From: Pecten maximus
Lineage: Eukaryota
DNA length: 64,000 bases
Assembly (NCBI RefSeq): GCF_902652985.1
Contig: NC_047022.1
Coordinates: forward strand, 34,844,001-34,908,000
Reading direction: 5' to 3'
Shown piece by piece: positions 4,117 to 21,301 of the stretch (position 1 is its first letter; each line of letters starts with the position of its first letter). Position numbers and translations under genes: made by a program. The notes beneath the pieces are model-generated. The model saw only the letters and a list, made by a program, of their open reading frames with translations. It had not been told where the DNA came from and ran no database searches.

Positions 4117-5270
4117 CAGGGCGATTCAGTGATCTCTGCGTGTTAATTGCTTTAAAAACAGGCGAAACCACCCACGGAAATTCATACAATCGTTTTTATG
4201 AATTGTTTGAACATCATGCATATACAACTTAACTGTGCTTTTAAAACCTTGGAGGTATGGACGAGACAAGCAAGTGCAATCCCCCCTAAGCTCATGTCAA
4301 TTGACTTATCAAATCTGTAAATAATTGTCAAAACTATAAGACAGCGTGTTTTTAGAACCTATTTGTAGTGCCAATAATATTCAGTACATTGCGCAACAAG
4401 ATGGAAGTCGTGTATCGCCACAAGGTCAATGCAAAACCCAAGTTACATCACATAAGTCATTACGACTTAATTCTATGTCGACCAATGACTACATAGGGAT
4501 CTTGGTGCCCATCGTTGACTTATCTTTATTGGTTCCGTCAGACTGCTTTTCTCTCTCTACTTCTCCTCTTAACAATCTGATAACAAGAATTAGTGGAACC
4601 TACATGTCATCCCTCCTAAAATTTCTCAAAATCCAAGACAGCTGCTGATCAGCAATTTTCTTTTCCAGAACTTTAAATGGCACACGCAACTAGTTATAAA
4701 AAAGAAACCTTACACGAAAGTTTTAAGGATACCCCTCCAGTACTTTTCAGGAAATAGCAATAACAATCTTCAATGCCCAAAATCGAAGATGGTTGTCAGC
4801 CATTTTGTTTTTCTGATCAATTATCAAATAAAAGTTTCTTTACGTCACATGTTACAAATATGTAATGTTTCTCTAGATATTCTCTTGACCTGTGCTGCAT
4901 AATCGGTGTATAATGGATATTGGGAATATTATCAAACAATTTGATTCTAAAACCGAATTTCAAAAAATATTCCACCATCTGTATAAGGCCTGACATAGGT
5001 GAAGATAAAGGTCACAACTGCAGGTTAAGATTTTACATTCCCTTGCCCGAATGGCTTGTCTAGATACTACGTAATTCAGACTTACTTTCCAATAACATGC
5101 AATTCCTGATTTGTAATAACCGATCCGACCTACAAACACTTGTTTGCAGGTTGCTTTATAACCAATGTGTAAGTAACATCAAATATTCTAATTTACTCCA
5201 CCTTCATTCAAGACAACAGCCACTCATGGGCCTTTAAAGAAAACAAAACAACTATTTCCATAAAATACTC

Positions 5271-5276
5271 TTTATT
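5271..5276 (-). other. Candidate distal polyadenylation signal (AATAAA) of SRSF1
   Basis: tttatt on the + strand at the boundary between the TE-free region and repeat-derived sequence. Other AATAAA hexamers lie closer to the stop codon. Confidence 0.35.
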
Positions 5277-6481
5277 TTATACAGCATGAAGCTAATGATA
5301 AAACAACGAATTTCATGACAGATGATTTATGGACATTGTCAAACAATTACATTTAAAAGATGCATGAAAATGACTTTATATTAAAAATGCACAACATTTT
5401 CTCACAATGGTGGATGTAATAACAAGCCATGCATTTCTTTAAGAAATAAAACTGAAATAAAAAAAAAAATACATTGGATGAATGCTGTGACTCCAGAATT
5501 TCTCCATAATTCATCTTTATTCCATCCATGAATCCTGCATACACACAGTCTGTTTTATCGTACCGTAGCATTATCTGTATCTGGTAAAGCCATTCTTCAG
5601 AGAAAAGTAGAAACTTTTACCAGGCTTTCCATGGTTGTCTCATCTTATCCTGGCCATTTTAACATCTCTCAAAAATAACTATGAAGTAGGATGTCACTAA
5701 AAAATAACTCAATATGAATATTAAAACATTTTCAAGGATAAAACACCTTTTTAGTATCAAATAAGTCCAAAGTTTAGTGAAAATTAAAGCAGCAAACTAT
5801 TAAAGTAATATTAATATATATCAGACATCATTGCATAGTAAAGAAGAAAAAAAAGCTAAAAAGGGAATGGGTTACAAGGGGCAGAAGTGAACATCAAAAT
5901 TTTACAAAAAGGAGAAAATAATCCTGTCTGATATATACATGTGATCGTATAGCTTCCCTCTAAACAATAAAAAAACAACCTTGTTTGCCCCATTTCAACT
6001 AGATAAGAAAAATAAAATGATACCTTATAATTTCATGGTCACGGGGGGGGGGGGGGGAGAGAGTAGGGAGTGAGGGGGTGTAGGAATACACCCGTTTTTT
6101 TTGTTTTTTTTTTATAAATACACCCGTGTACACACAAAGTGTGCAGTACGTTCCCGGGGCGTCGGGTCATGGCCTCTGAATTGCCCACAAAGTATCTGTA
6201 TCTAGACTTCCCTCCCAAAACATTCGCTTTATGCCTTAACCTCTATTTTTCTGATTTAAATGGAAAAACTTTTTCTAATAAACCTAAATATTGTCTCATG
6301 CTAAACACAATTTGGAATCCACATTTTCAATTTTTACAATATTTCTCTATCCCTATGGCAGCAATCAGTATATAAAACCCAGCAAATAATTCCTCCAATC
6401 TTCTTTCCATCTGAACTTCTTTTTACATATAAAATATCAACATAAATATAGCTCAACTTATATGTTCAATTTTTCAATGTC

Positions 6482-7040
6482 CTCCATTCGGTCCATTTAT
6501 CCATGTCTTTCCAATATTCTCAAAAAAAAACAACATTTCCTCCAAACTCCATTCGGTCCAAATCCATATTTTCCATACCTTTTTTTTCAGAACATAAAAG
6601 TTGTTTAAAATAATTTTCTCCAATCTCCATTCGGTCCCTCCCAAATCCATTTACTTTCAATTTTTTGAAACTTTATCCAATACTTGAGAAATAAATCTCA
6701 AATAATTCCTCAAACCTCCATTCAGTCCAAAATCCATTTATTTGAACTTTACCAATCATCCTATATCATTTCCTCCAATCTCCATTCGGTCCTATTATAT
6801 CCATATAATTCCCATCTTTCCAAATTAGGGAGAAAAATCCTTTAATTTTCCTCCATCGCCATTCGGTCCTAAATCCAAACAAATTCCAAATCCTTACTTA
6901 TTTTCATCCTTAATTACTTTCCAATATCTCCATTCGGTCCTATGGGCATATCCATTAAATTTCCAATCTTTCCAAATTATTTCCAAATTTTCAAGGGGAA
7001 AAATCTTATAACTTATTTTCCTCCCATCTCCATTCGGTCC
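6482..7040 (-). repeat. Eight interspaced copies of the 13-mer GGACCGAAUGGAG in a GGA-rich block downstream of the SRSF1 stop
   Basis: ctccattcggtcc at 6482, 6547, 6625, 6716 (1 mismatch), 6780, 6857 (1 mismatch), 6928 and 7028, with non-identical spacers rich in tcc/tcca. Confidence 0.9.
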
Positions 7041-8778
7041 AAAATCCATCTTTTATCCAACTTCCCTATCCTAAATCCATCCAATCCAATATTTATCCCA
7101 TTCCTTCCAACTTCAAAACCTTAAGTGTTGAAAAATACAAAGAGACACATTTTAACAATGCTACAAAATGTATGACAGAGCGAGCATTGGAATTATAATA
7201 TGCAAAGATATTTGACTATGAAAATTTTAATAATTAATTTTTGTTCTACTTTTCATAAGGGAAATCGAGCATTTAATAGGGGCTCAAATGTCTGAACACT
7301 TTGAATATTTTTTTATTTTTGTCATAAATCATTCTTTCTTATTTATTCAATCTTAAATTTCTTAATATTTATATTTCCTGCAAACAATGTAGAATAACAT
7401 CACACTCAAAATTATCCTAAAAAATTGAAGATAAAGCTTTTAAGAGTTTTTGTGTGTAATAATTAACAAAACATTGATAAAGTTTCAAGCAAATAAAATC
7501 AACGTCCATCTATCGTCAAAACTATGTCCTTCAATTTCCACTATTTTCACAAATGCATGATACCATTTATACCAGTAAATAAGAAATTTATCCACCAAAG
7601 ACCACAAAGTTTACCTACTTGCTTTTTACAAAATATACAAACTTGTTAATATTGAACTGAATGGGTTAATGATAAATTCATAATTAAAGATGACTAATTC
7701 AATATTTTTGTCTGAATCATTGGACAGTCAACTATTTTCAATGGAATATTTAAAATATGATTTTATAAACGTAAAGATAGCAACTTGTATCAAGAAACAA
7801 CACAATACCAATTAATAATGCATACAAAAATCACCTCCAATAATTGAAATGGATGTCTGGAGAAAAAGGTCACTCCCTGCCTCCATCATATCCAATTGGA
7901 AGCGACCAACTCCATGATCCACATCCCTGATCGCACAGAACGGTTATGGACAACCCTTAGGCATATAATTGACAGCTGGACTGTTAACTCATAACTGTGT
8001 AAGAAATGATTAATAGTGAAATATTGTACAAGTAGCAGTCACTTGTGAAATCTTTAATTTCATAAGGCACTCCTCCTTTAAGAACACTCATGATTACGCT
8101 TATCCCCCCTCCTACATACAGTGCATTACTTTTACTTCTAATGAAATCCAAATTTGTAAATTGTTAGTTTATGCAACACTAGTACTTTTGATATTCTTCA
8201 AACTGGTCTTTTCTGACACTATCAAACAGACCACAAATTTCAGGGGTAAAAGTTTTGTTTTGTTTTTGCTTGATGTTGGATAAGAAAACAAGAAAAAACA
8301 TATTGCTCCTGTAAAACATCAAAACATAGTACTAAACAGTATTGGAGACATTTTGCTTCCAAATTTTGAGATATATATCTCTCCTTTTATTTAGATGAAT
8401 GCCCTTTGTAATGATATTTGTTACTTTTTGATGATTGCCAAATAAATAATTTGTAAAATGACTGTTTTCTGTCCTTCCTTATTTTTGGGAGCTTAAAACA
8501 CGATATATGCAGGATTCTAATTGGTATGGCCTGTTTACAGATGGATTCCCTTTCTCATCAGGTTAAATAAAAAATTACAACATATCATAAATCATCTTCA
8601 GGTTCTTGAATGCTATTGTGAACTTATTTCAGATATTAAAATGTAATGACTTGATGCCAAAGTCACCAATTAAGAAATGTTAATACATACTTTACTGACA
8701 AAAAATGGTTTTCATGAAGTTACATAATGACCACACCCTGTTAATGCAGTATGGTGACGATATGAGACAACAGACCAT

Positions 8779-8982
8779 TCAAGATCGTGACCGAGATCGT
8801 CTCCTTCGCTGTACAGAGGAGTAGTCAGGTGACCCTCTGCCTGGGGACCCTCTGCCTGGGGACCTTCTTCTGCGGGGACTGCGGCTTAAACTTCGACTGC
8901 GGCTTTTTGAATACCGACTGCGACGGCTGCTGCTGCTACTACTACTGTAATTCTCTTTCACTCTAATGTATGACACTTCACC
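8779..8982 (-). CDS. SRSF1: SRSF1 coding exon 4 (end of RRM2 and RS domain)
   Basis: Acceptor tgtttCAG; GEVSYIRVKE...RSRSLSRSPRRRRSP...RSRSRS*. The four exons total 762 nt = 253 aa plus stop, and intron positions match vertebrate SRSF1. Confidence 0.95.
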   Translation of the reverse strand, partial: GEVSYIRVKENYSSSSSSSRRSRYSKSRSRSLSRSPRRRRSPGRGSPGRGSPDYSSVQRRRRSRSRS

Positions 8983-9105
8983 CTGAAACATCAAAACACA
9001 TTGTTCTGAAATTGTATTTATATATCATAACTATTGTTAGGGTTAGATTGAACAGTTTAAGATATCAATACTACCAAACTAATCAATACATCAGATTCCA
9101 TATAC

Positions 9106-9770
9106 AACAAGGGCCCGTTGGAGAGCCACAACATCCGCCCGCAATATTTGACACTTGGAAGGGGGGTAGTTTCACAGGTTGTAATGCTTTAAAATGAAGT
9201 ATAATTAGTTCACATGTTTATATACAGAATATACAGAGCCTGGGTCGGGTAGTATTAAGTTACGGTCCGGATAAGTAAAATCATCAAAGGGCAATAACGC
9301 CGCTAATAAGGGGGTAAGGGGCATAATTTTGGCATGTGACACTCCGGCTCATCTAGATGTATATTTGTGTTAAGTATGGAGAGCTCAACACCATACGTGT
9401 CCAAGTAAAATCATCAAAAGGGAATAACTCCACAAATAAGGGGGCAAGGGGCATGATTTTGGTATGCGACACTCCGGCTCATCAATATGTATATTTGTGT
9501 CAAGTATGGAGAGCCTGGGTCGAGTAGTACTGGAGTTATGGTCCGGACAAGTAAAATCATCAAAGGGGAATAACTCCGCAAATATGGGGGTAAGGGGCAT
9601 GATTTTGGTATGCGACACTCCGGCTCATCAATATGTATATTTGTGTCAAGTATGGAGAGCCTGGGTCGAGTAGTATTGGAGTTATGGTCCGGACACCATA
9701 TGTGCCTGCCCACCCACCCGCCCGCCAACATGATAACATAATATGCCTCGTCTTTCGTCGGGCGTATAAA
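9106..9770 (-). mobile_element. HINE/DINE-1-like element with ~148 bp tandem units, in SRSF1 intron 3
   Basis: Minus-strand 5' end TTTTATACGCCCG with short inverted repeat and GGGY microsatellite, tandem units, 3' palindrome ...gggcccttgtt. Confidence 0.75.
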
Positions 9771-9869
9771 AAGAAAGCTCAATTTTACTTTTGTTTCAAA
9801 TAAAGCATCTTTTGTAGGTGAAATCAAAATCAAACAGGATTCCAGGTTGTAATAGCAATAGGCAAAAAA

Positions 9870-11548
9870 AACAAGAGGCCCATGGGGCCTGTATCGCTCA
9901 CCTGGTTGGATTTGACCAAATGTCAAAATAATGTTCATGTTCAATTCCTTTTGTTTGTCAACCTCAAACAATGCTATATTTGGTTATAGTCTGGGGATCC
10001 CAACTGCTTTTAAGAAATAATGAAGTCCAGACTCTCTAAGTTTACAACATGCATTAATAACTTAAAGCGACTATTCGGGGAAATAAACTTAGTCTAGATA
10101 CATTATTTGGTCTTCCAAAAGTTCTATCACAGCAACGCGATGGTCAAGTTCTGCTTGCATTGTCCAGTTCTGACCAATTTAATTCGGGAAAAGCCCCGTC
10201 TTAATATAACATATATCTATTTTTATAAGTCACGTGGTATTTCGAAAACGAGGCAGTGAGAAAACATCAACAGAAACATGTGAATTTTTAGAGATGTCCG
10301 ATTCATCAAGCAGTCAAAGCAGTAACACGGTACGTAAATACTTCATTAACATGTCAAATATGATGCATGTGTGGGATTTATACCTAAGGATTTTTTTCAT
10401 ATGACTTAATACATGCAATAACAACAATAAAAACTGAAATCGGTGTCAATCGGCGTCCGATGCCGAGATGGGGGCCAATGTGGGGTAATCTTTATGTCAT
10501 CGTCACCGGTGATATCGCGATCAATTCCTTTAGGCTAGAATAATAGTTGTTTAGGCATATATATATATATATTAGCGAAGCAATCATGACATAGTGTTAT
10601 TGATTTAACAGGATATGAGTAGATGAGGTGAATGCTTACAGTAATGACTTGTTTCAACTACAAATATGTTATACATGTGTACATGCATATAACGTCAACT
10701 CAAATACGGCGCTTTGTTGCCGAAGTCGTAACAGTTTTAGGCCGATATCTCTTGGCTTCGGAAGCCATGTTTCTGTCGCTTCTGTTTACGTTCTACAAAC
10801 CTAGATTCTTGCGCATGCGCCCAAAGCGGGAAATTTGCATTTTATCTCGTCATTCGACAGTGAGAGGATTCCCCTGAAAATTATTATTTTTTAATTCTAG
10901 GGGTTACATATCGCCAAAACTAAGTCGGAATTTTTCATAAGAGAGTATTTTCTTTATTAATTTGCTGTTTTTTCAACTTTGACCTATTTCTTCCCCGAAT
11001 AGTCGCTTTAATGACTAGTAGCAATTTAAAGGAATTGCCACAATTTCCCATATTGGGCCCCACCTCTCCGGCCCCTTTGGGGTCAGAGTCACCATTTATG
11101 CAAAATCTGTTCCCGTTCCCCCAAGGATGTTTCTGACCAAATTGGGATCAAATCCATTCATAACTTTATGGCTAGTAGAAATTTAAAGGCATTACCTCTA
11201 TTTCCCGTATTGGGCCCCGCCCCTTTTGCCCCTTGGGGGTCAGAGTCACCATTGATGCAAAATCTGTTCCCCTTCCCCCAAGGATGTTTCTGACCAAATT
11301 GGGTTCAAATCCATTTATAACTTGATGACTAGTAGCAATTTAAAGGAATTGCCTCAATTTCCCATATTGGGGGTCAGTCACCATTTATGCAAAATCTGAT
11401 CCCTTTCCGCCAAGGATGTTTCTGACCAAATTTGGTCAAAATCCAATATTAAAGAACTTTTCGACTAGTAGCGATTTGAAGCAAATGTTAACGGACAACG
11501 GACCATGACATAAGCTCATCACCGGACCTTCGGTCCAGGTGAGCTAAA
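9870..11548 (-). mobile_element. HINE-like element with tandem units, interrupted by a TTAA TIR element
   Basis: 5' TTTTAGCTCACCTGG, 3' CCAGGTGAGCG...ggccccatgggcctcttgtt; tandem units at 11012-11480. Confidence 0.8.
10066..11007. mobile_element. Non-autonomous Kolobok-like DNA transposon
   Basis: 17 bp perfect TIR AGCGACTATTCGGGGAA; TTAA TSD (10062-65 and 11008-11); purine (AG) termini rather than the piggyBac CCC. Confidence 0.8.
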
Positions 11549-11565
11549 AAATAAAATGATAATAC

Positions 11566-11738
11566 CTCATGGGACCTGAACTTTGAGTCATCAAGGTTTT
11601 GTACAGCATACTGCATGTCTTCCTTCCGTAGGAACTCCACCACACCAGTGCCATCTTTGTATGTGTCAGCGTAACACACATCCCCTGCCTCACGCATATG
11701 GTCCTTTAAATCTTGCCAGCTGCCAGAACCAGGAAGTC
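11566..11738 (-). CDS. SRSF1: SRSF1 coding exon 3 (pseudo-RRM2)
   Basis: Acceptor tttaAG; [25 protein letters not shown]...FRSHE with the diagnostic SWQDLKD motif; donor GAG|GTATTA at 11565. 173 nt. Confidence 0.95.
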
Positions 11739-11852: not shown

Positions 11853-12067
11853 CTGAAACAAGGACACGGTACTCGGATCTTCTGGAGGGTGGACCTCGGC
11901 CACCTCCTCCTCCTCCTCCGCCACCACCACCACCACCAAACATTCCCCTGCCGCCGCCGCCTCCACCAAAACTTGGGGGACCTCTTGATCCTCGAGGGAA
12001 CTCGACCCTTAGTGTGTATCCATCATAGTTGTAGCCATCCCTCATTCTAACTGCATCTTCAGCATCC
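11853..12067 (-). CDS. SRSF1: SRSF1 coding exon 2 (end of RRM1, Gly-rich linker, start of RRM2)
   Basis: Acceptor CAG at 12070-12068; (R)[25 protein letters not shown]-Gly [18 protein letters not shown](G); donor G|GTATAT at 11852. 215 nt, in frame with exon 1. Confidence 0.95.
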
Positions 12068-20760: not shown

Positions 20761-21131
20761 TATTCGAGAAAATTATAATCATGTAGCTGATAGTAATATA
20801 CTGCCCGGTGTAAATCATATCGTGCTGGGGCTTGCTACAGTCGATAATGTGAGGGACTTCATACCATGCCGTACTCAAACAATGTTAGAGGTTTTACACT
20901 GCGAGATACTTTTGACAGGCGCAGTCGGCAAAATCATATCGGATAGAAAAAGAGCCGACCAGCGGCCTCTTATGTTATAGGAGTTACCCTGCCGCAGGGT
21001 ATGAATATGTTCTGACTTGATGAAATGTCTCGAGAATAAATGATAAAGTTAAACTATTTCGAGTAATTGGAAATACAAAAATTTGATACAAGGTTATATT
21101 TATTAGTAGGCCTGTGCTAGCACGTGCATAC

Positions 21132-21301
21132 CTTGAATCTTCAAACTCCACAAAGGCAAAAGGTGGGCCACGTCTGTTTTTCAACTCAATGTAACGAATG
21201 TTTCCATATTTTGTAAATAAATCTTCGATATCTTTTTGTCTTACATCGGGTGGTAAATTGCCGACATAAATTCTGGAATCAGATCCGCTTCTAGACGACA
21301 T
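21132..21301 (-). CDS. SRSF1: SRSF1 coding exon 1 (RRM1 N-terminal part)
   Basis: [56 protein letters not shown], with RNP2/RNP1 motifs. ATG at 21301, donor AG|GTATGC at 21131. 170 nt, phase 2. Confidence 0.95.

Follow-up and report, generated by a model that had tools for sequence, protein, structure and literature searches.

An eight-copy 13-mer array at the start of the final exon of king scallop SRSF1, behind an optional 3'UTR intron: a candidate autoregulatory element

A stretch of 64,000 nt from the genome of the king scallop Pecten maximus (NC_047022.1, positions 34,844,001 to 34,908,000; the window) carries a gene for a serine/arginine-rich (SR) splicing protein on its minus strand. 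The final exon of this gene opens with a block that is rich in GGA, poor in C, and contains eight copies of a 13-nt sequence. The block follows directly on an optional intron in the 3' untranslated region (3'UTR). A preliminary description, made from the DNA letters, had proposed that the repeated 13-mer is a binding site for SRSF1 on its own transcript and that the block could act as a sensor of SRSF1 concentration. Here, we describe the gene, the transcript and the array, and weigh this proposal together with the other explanations of the array. Positions are those of the window, and features lie on the minus strand unless stated otherwise.

The SRSF1 gene and its optional 3'UTR intron

The coding exons of the host gene were searched singly and not as a joined protein. 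Exon 1 encodes the first half of RRM1. It lies at 21131..21289, with approximate boundaries, and was located by tblastn with exon 1 of a paralog (75% identity, E 2.5e-25). Exon 2 (11853..12067) is an open reading frame (ORF) between a cag|G acceptor and a G|gt donor, and its translation gives the end of RRM1 and a Gly-rich hinge. Exon 3 (11566..11738) has an AAG acceptor and encodes the pseudo-RRM with the SWQDLKD motif, as judged from its sequence, its translation and a phmmer search. This search returned 654 matches at E<=1e-10 with identity up to 91%, and several representative matches resemble vertebrate SRSF1 isoforms. Exon 4 (7835..8982; translation and RNA contigs) encodes the arginine/serine (RS) domain at 8782-8982, reaches the stop codon TGA at 8779-8781 and continues into a proximal 3'UTR of 944 nt (7835-8778). 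A canonical N-terminal RRM can be read from RIYVGNLPP…PPFAFVEF in exon 1 and LRVEFPRG in exon 2. It is followed by the Gly-rich hinge and the SWQDLKD pseudo-RRM, in the order found in SRSF1-type proteins, and by a C-terminal RS domain, the translation of exon 4 (GEVSYIRVKENYSSSSSSSRRSRYSKSRSRS…RSRSRS*) being rich in RS and SR and ending in RRRRSRSRS*. By its predicted protein, the host gene is an SRSF1-type SR protein gene.

The hinge between the two RRMs (11853-12000) contains 13 consecutive Gly, as compared with nine in human SRSF1 (PMC7813835). This longer run could shift the preferred spacing of RRM1 and RRM2 sites in the scallop. The scallop protein retains the features that determine how GGA and C are recognised (PMC7813835), namely SWQDLKD, the RIYVGNL tyrosine and the RVEFPR glutamate (E87 in the human protein).

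The structure of the transcript is known from public sequencing runs, 20 of which contain most of 6300-9000. Four of these are recorded as RNA-Seq and have small, transcriptome-like contig sets. The RNA contigs of these four runs (X1, X3, X4 and X9), which belong to four studies, were mapped on 5200-11100. The contig over 7833-8984 is longer than its mapped part in all four runs, and in X4 and X9 it continues past 8984 into the end of exon 3 (…CTTGATGACTCAAAGTTCAGGTCCCATG). The 3' end of exon 3 is joined to ~8982 in these contigs, with a loose end at 8984. The continuation into exon 3 means that the 2.6-kb coding intron has been removed. Coverage of this intron is confined to repeat-derived pieces, and the bins from 10322 to 10912 are near zero in three runs. 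Since the intron is essentially without unique coverage, the material is mature RNA. The repeats in the same intron (9140-10124 and 10913-11100) reach an RNA-contig depth of up to thousands and have many loose ends, and two tandem copies of an ORF-bearing unit lie at 9385-9971. They are probably expressed transposon families.

Downstream of the RS exon, contigs run unbroken past the stop codon to 7833 in all four runs. A spliced joint from 7117 to 7833 is present in X4, X1, X3 and X9. It skips 715 nt that have CT..AC ends on the plus strand, with the cut at +2. A contig that retains the same sequence (7092-7862) is also present in each of the four runs. The junction and the retained contigs together define an optional 3'UTR intron of 715 nt with GT..AG ends (7120..7834), which is both removed and retained in mature RNA. 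Its donor reads GAG|GTGATT and its acceptor cacttaAG|G, with the AG at 7121-7120 and the first base of the next exon at 7119. The stop codon lies 944 nt from the junction, well beyond the 50-55 nt by which a 3'UTR exon junction is commonly judged. By unitig k-mer depth, which is a rough measure, the junction makes up 61, 38, 57, and 24% of the combined junction and retained signal. The preliminary description had placed the block in the SRSF1 mRNA, right after an acceptor-like sequence at 7120 that is an AAG like the acceptor of coding exon 3, and had pointed to a possible splice junction ending at 7119. The RNA contigs of the four studies confirm that the block is transcribed within the mRNA and that a junction ends exactly at 7119, in agreement with the sequence, and exon 3 does have an AAG acceptor.

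The array itself is covered by single contigs that start at 7121 and extend down to 5869 in X4, 6142 in X3, and 6198 in X1, and by two overlapping contigs in X9 (6661-7121 and 6061-6666). The rest of the distal 3'UTR (5282..6379) is supported by RNA contigs that reach down to 5282-5561, and AATAAA occurs at 5521 and 5276. No further 3'UTR joint is common to the contigs of all four runs within 5200-8984. X9 has one single-contig joint, from 6113 to 9869, which connects a poly-A run to repeat-rich intron sequence. The contigs that end loosely at 5869 and 5911 were considered as signs of a further 3'UTR splice, which was rejected, as the foreign sequence at these ends is absent from the window and the node is a dispersed repeat.

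Several other features of the distal 3'UTR were observed. Dispersed-repeat pieces occupy 5869-6171, together with an A-rich run and a C15 run at 6043-6057 (G on the plus strand). The repeats account for the contigs with loose ends at 5869 and at 5911. The length of the C15 run varies from one RNA sample to another, 3 or 6 letters being omitted. The region just downstream of the block (5860-6200) matches more than 40 other genomic loci. Within it, the 77 nt at 6095-6171 are 83-86% identical to a unit that occurs every ~2.26 kb on the unplaced scaffolds C3351, C1658, C1520, and C3134, in what looks like a tandem gene or satellite cluster. Unitig k-mer depth steps up toward the 3' end across 5200-8984 in all four runs. 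In X4 it is 25 over the RS exon and proximal UTR, 63 over the array, and 88-92 near 5600-5900. This stepwise rise could be a 3' bias of the libraries or could come from an extra RNA species that contains the distal UTR alone.

The GGA-rich block and its 13-mers

The block that opens the distal exon (6380..7119) was delimited by its GGA content, its eight 13-mer cores and the RNA contigs. The sense strand of 6380-7121 consists of 36.8% A, 31.0% T, 26.8% G, and 5.4% C, as compared with 17.7% C in the whole window. The 740 nt of the block hold 61 GGA triplets. The resulting density of 82.4 per kb compares with 10.8 for the window as a whole, 8.4 for the 715-nt intron upstream, and 13.6 for the sequence downstream of the block. 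The GGA count steps up across the acceptor: the final 100 nt of the intron contain 2, and the opening 100 nt of the exon contain 12. Because this step falls exactly at the acceptor in use, the block begins at the splice site and is not merely near it.

A pattern search found GGACCGAAUGGAG in eight copies on the minus strand between 6482 and 7040, six of them exact and two with one mismatch. On this strand, GGACCGAATGGAG recurs eight times between 7040 and 6482. The copies start on the minus strand at 7040, 6940, 6869, 6792, 6728, 6637, 6559, and 6494, so that the start-to-start spacing is 100, 71, 77, 64, 91, 78, and 65 nt. Copy 1 (7028..7040, GGACCGAAUGGAG) lies at exon nt 80, and the eight cores together span exon nt 80-638, downstream of the optional 3' splice site. 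Copies 2 (6928..6940), 4 (6780..6792), 6 (6625..6637), 7 (6547..6559), and 8 (6482..6494) are likewise exact. The remaining two copies read GGACTGAATGGAG and GGACCGAATGGCG. One has a C>T change in the CpG and the other has GGAG changed to GGCG. They are copy 3 (6857..6869, GGACCGAAUGGCG, one mismatch) and copy 5 (6716..6728, GGACUGAAUGGAG, CpG to TpG). As a control, the sequence was shuffled 100 times with its dinucleotides preserved. None of the 100 shuffles reached 9 matches, and the shuffle mean was 0.61.

The array units were aligned with MAFFT. Pairwise identity is 96.2% in the 13-mer, 59% in the next 12 nt, whose consensus is aUuGGAGGAAA, and 44% in the spacers. The spacers are close to shuffled spacers, with 12.4 vs 11.9 matches per best 20-nt window. 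The conserved core is a little longer than the 13 nt of the preliminary description and reads roughly uGGAuuu-GGACCGAAUGGAG-aUuGGAGGAAA. The CpG of the core is present in seven of the eight copies, and its sole change is from CpG to TpG. Relative to the spacers, the core is under some constraint. Units 1 and 3 share remnants of a common spacer sequence in the alignment, so the array probably arose by tandem duplication, after which the core alone was kept.

The block has no stable structure. Its minimum free energy (MFE) is -125.8 kcal/mol with z = 0.05, and without a stable fold it is accessible as a single strand. A structured RNA or a known RNA family was rejected on this z and on Rfam hits that were all below threshold (snoR20a, 29 bits vs a gathering score of 42). 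Coding potential was rejected as well. The ORFs of the block are at most 58 aa and spurious, and one of them had no match in the protein collection.

Genomic background and the convergent paralog

Genome-wide searches were made in the Pecten maximus assembly (918,306,378 bp, 3,983 scaffolds). The exact 13-mer occurs eight times in it, six times in the array and twice as isolated single copies, and a reversed control pattern occurs four times. A search of the 918 Mb genome with the 742-nt block found no match but the block itself. The block and its array are thus confined to a single locus, which rules out an origin from a dispersed repeat or a transposon. A regular satellite or minisatellite is ruled out by the irregular 64-100 nt spacing, by spacers that approach shuffled sequence and by Tandem Repeats Finder, which reported no regular array with a period of ~75 nt in the block. 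The preliminary description had counted eight copies of the 13-mer, six of them exact, at 64-100 nt spacing in a GGA-dense and C-poor block. It had also taken the array for something other than an ordinary satellite on account of its non-identical spacers, and had considered an occurrence at many unrelated loci to be a way in which the proposal could fail. The counts and the composition were reproduced, and the array is neither a satellite nor a dispersed repeat. A DNA-pattern search of the Joint Genome Institute (JGI) metagenomes is silent on molluscs. It gave 15 matches, all in unrelated microbial repeats (collagen-like coding repeats and other tandem units), none of which is C-poor or GGA-rich.

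The genomic background for GGA arrays was taken from 20 random 10-kb pieces (200 kb), together with loci of the window and of the paralog region. The random samples L029, L030, L033, L039, and L041 contain regular minisatellites that have a period of ~17-45 nt and are highly identical. Minisatellites of this kind are abundant in P. maximus, and an origin by tandem duplication is likely for the SRSF1 array too. They have a fixed short period and uniformly high identity, whereas the SRSF1 array is irregular, has saturated spacers and exists at a single locus.

These comparisons bear on the possibility that the array is a neutral relic, namely an old 3'UTR minisatellite that arose by tandem duplication and is now decaying, in which case the acceptor at its edge and the high GGA content would be coincidental. 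This genome abounds in tandem arrays, and the traces of spacer similarity in units 1 and 3 suggest such an origin. RNA variants from the four samples also fail to separate the array from its surroundings. There are none in the 740-nt array vs six in ~2.7 kb of flanking UTR, a deficit that is not significant at these numbers. Decay, however, should erode core and spacer alike, and here the spacers have fallen to 44% identity, about that of shuffled sequence, while the core stands at 96% with its CpG included. The background arrays are regular, short in period and highly identical throughout, whereas the SRSF1 array has no period that Tandem Repeats Finder detects. Moreover, the boundary in composition coincides with a splice site that is used. 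We consider it improbable that the array is such a relic.

The genome contains a second copy of the pseudo-RRM exon, which is 82% identical and lies on the plus strand at C8:34833851-34834021. It belongs to a second complete SRSF1-like gene outside the window (C8:34831373-34835333, plus strand), whose exons were identified and whose RS exon is short (GETSYVRVKEDKGGRSRSRSPRGSSPRYDRSRSRS). The two SRSF1 genes are arranged tail to tail. The stop codon of the paralog (~34835334) is ~14 kb from the 3' end of the window gene (~34849280). The paralog is followed by an array of its own at 3.1-5.1 kb past its stop, in the sense of the paralog (L028:2451-4420, which is C8:34838451-34840420, plus strand). 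This array is irregular and degenerate. It comprises 11-14 copies of a ~24-34 nt core, GGAUCUUyGGAAACAUCUAGCUUAGGAU, at a spacing of 33-219 nt. TAGGATC occurs 14 times in it, GGA reaches 46 per kb, and a pyrimidine tract plus AG lies at its upstream edge.

The two arrays have motifs in common, and the background for these motifs was 559 kb. UUUGGA occurs 12 times per kb in the SRSF1 array and 6 times per kb in the paralog array, with a background of 0.34. The longer motif GGAU(y)UUUGGA occurs 2.7 times per kb in the SRSF1 array and 1.0 times per kb in the paralog array, with a background of 0.004. Overall, the motifs common to both arrays are 18-700 times enriched over the background. Either shared ancestry or shared selection for a UUGGA-type site would fit them.

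A further possibility is a DNA-level element, in which the eight 13-bp sites would form a homotypic cluster for a sequence-specific DNA-binding protein and act as an enhancer or insulator between the two convergent SRSF1 paralogs. The strict conservation of 13 bp and the spacing of 64-100 bp are typical of clusters of transcription-factor sites, and the core contains a CpG. The strand asymmetry of the block (5% C on the transcribed strand), its start at an exon boundary and its presence in mature mRNA point instead to RNA, and no known factor motif was matched. GGAATG, which we take to be a TEAD-like motif, occurs once and outside the cores, the core itself reading CGAATG. A role at the level of DNA is very unlikely.

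A candidate feedback element in the SRSF1 mRNA

The binding preferences of SRSF1 are well described. Its pseudo-RRM reads GGA through SWQDLKD and its RRM1 prefers C (PMC7813835). The Gly linker lets RRM1 sit on either side of the GGA, with optima at -4 and +6 in systematic evolution of ligands by exponential enrichment (SELEX), and the affinity of SRSF1 rises with the number of GGA motifs (PMC7813835). The unstructured, purine-rich GGA stretch at the start of the optional exon looks like an exonic splicing enhancer. We tentatively propose that it is an enhancer array which, when loaded with SR proteins, couples the level of SRSF1 to the removal of the 3'UTR intron. The block would serve as a multi-copy exonic binding platform for SR proteins. 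The 61 GGA triplets would supply the motif of the pseudo-RRM, and the eight constrained 13-mers, which carry almost the only C residues of the block, would supply the preference of RRM1. When SRSF1 is abundant, it would load onto this platform, alone or with partners, and promote the use of the acceptor at 7120. In the spliced mRNA, an exon junction would then sit a long way past the stop codon, and the output of this mRNA would fall through nonsense-mediated decay (NMD) or through altered export or translation. The outcome would be negative feedback, as in human SRSF1. The position of the junction, 944 nt past the stop, fits the usual rule for NMD that depends on the exon junction complex (EJC), which may be the pathway acting here.

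Two known designs are relevant to this proposal. In human SRSF1, the 3'UTR intron is retained in the productive mRNA (Sun et al., 2010, via PMC9262138 and PMC4379411), and the protein drives the removal of its own 3'UTR intron, which leads to unproductive isoforms (PMC9262138; PMC4379411). The parallel to mammalian autoregulation through 3'UTR splicing that the preliminary description had drawn holds at the level of architecture (PMC9262138). The scallop and human genes belong to the same family, and both have an optional intron past the stop, so that both isoforms encode the same protein. They differ in that the human gene has several isoforms and one 3'UTR intron is supported in the scallop, and in that the cited papers describe no discrete eight-copy 13-mer array for the human gene. 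The second design is the enhancer of Drosophila doublesex (dsx), where a regulated 3' splice site is followed by an exon with six 13-nt repeats (three in fru) (PMC1747189). Each dsx repeat nucleates an SR-protein complex, and the rate of splicing rises with the copy number (PMC1747189).

The eight 13-nt cores of the scallop likewise lie inside an exon downstream of an optional acceptor. Their motif is different, however, and no homology is implied. The dsx repeats belong to a target gene, where they occupy a coding or sex-specific exon, and need Tra and Tra2, whereas the scallop cores are in the 3'UTR of the regulator itself. Clusters of a protein's own motif beside an optional splice event that lowers its output are also found in poison exon 2 of TRA2B and in the 3'UTR region and intron of TDP-43. 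Those clusters are degenerate GAA-rich or UG-rich runs, unlike the near-identical 13-mers in diverged spacers of the scallop. From these comparisons, the scallop element would combine two known designs, SR-protein autoregulation by 3'UTR splicing and multi-copy exonic enhancers, and would need no new category.

Several observations weigh against the proposed enhancer array. GGA richness is not special by itself in this genome, in which GGA-containing minisatellites are frequent. Of the 20 random 10-kb pieces, 7 contain an array that reaches 24 or more GGA per 600 nt on one strand, and the maximum per 600 nt is 53 in the SRSF1 block and 50 in the best random piece. For the same reason, the paralog array alone is weak evidence. 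The optional acceptor is an AAG whose pyrimidine tract, read by eye, is interrupted 9 nt before the AG. By eye, it is no weaker than the constitutive acceptors of the SRSF1 gene, and as constitutive exon 3 also has an AAG after an AT-rich tract, the argument that an AAG acceptor is weak does not discriminate. The spacing within the core is also close to, but not at, the SELEX optima of -4 and +6, from which it is off by at least one nt, and the motif follows the published rule only roughly. The C residues of the core are at +1/+2 after one GGA and at -5/-6 before the next. A spliced share of 24-61%, as given by the rough k-mer depths, is high for an efficiently degraded NMD substrate and does not suggest rapid decay, and to our knowledge EJC-dependent NMD has not been demonstrated in molluscs. 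Finally, a degenerate SR-protein site would not call for all 13 positions to be invariant. This invariance is explained at least as well by a heteromeric complex, by another RNA-binding protein or by a small RNA.

The last point leads to the possibility that the array is a platform for some other factor, which could be an RNA-binding protein or complex, a miRNA or a piRNA, and which would control the stability, translation or localisation of the SRSF1 mRNA. The lin-4 sites in lin-14 are an example of such a multi-site 3'UTR design. The 13 positions are invariant in six of the eight copies, which suits base pairing or a multi-domain reader better than it suits a site made of GGA and C. Since both isoforms, spliced and retained, contain the array, it can act in mature mRNA whatever the outcome of splicing. 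In addition, UA precedes three of the cores, which gives UAGGAC, a sequence that we take to be hnRNP A1-like. Against a small RNA stands the finding that, outside the array, the genome has a perfect complement of the 13-mer at two single loci only, neither of them in a convincing hairpin. None of the conserved bilaterian miRNA seeds is known to match a 7-mer within the core. A platform for another factor also leaves unexplained the exact coincidence of the acceptor with the start of the GGA-rich block, and the fact that the paralog has a different core with the same enrichment of UUGGA. We regard such a platform as possible but rather unlikely.

The feedback reading, in which SR proteins on the array promote the removal of the 3'UTR intron, is plausible and is the best available explanation of the locus. 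The analysis shows the array, its uniqueness in the genome, the constraint on its core relative to the spacers, its place in the SRSF1 mRNA and the alternative intron with its exact acceptor, whereas the identity of the binder, the way in which splicing responds and what becomes of the spliced mRNA are inferred. A more specific version can be formulated, although it is doubtful. The 13-mers might be high-affinity bipartite sites, with RRM1 on CC and the pseudo-RRM on the flanking GGA, that are filled cooperatively. The distal exon would then be an ultrasensitive sensor of free SRSF1, tuned by copy number, which switches the intron between its retained and removed states. The paralog would carry an independently diverged version, which would imply a recurrent and evolvable module of SR homeostasis outside the vertebrates.

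Homeostasis of SR proteins by unproductive splicing is well established in vertebrates. It rests there on long ultraconserved regions, in which the binding sites are hard to dissect. The candidate cis-element of the scallop is modular, as it consists of eight countable, near-identical 13-mers in an unstructured and nearly C-free background, beginning 80 nt into the exon. If another factor binds these sites, the array points to a new regulator of SRSF1 in molluscs. If SRSF1 binds them, autoregulation through a 3'UTR intron of SRSF1 would predate the vertebrates, and the scallop would offer a natural and easily mutated system in which site number and RRM1/RRM2 spacing can be related to feedback gain. 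The main value of the array would lie in being a clean natural system for how the number of sites sets the gain of a feedback loop.

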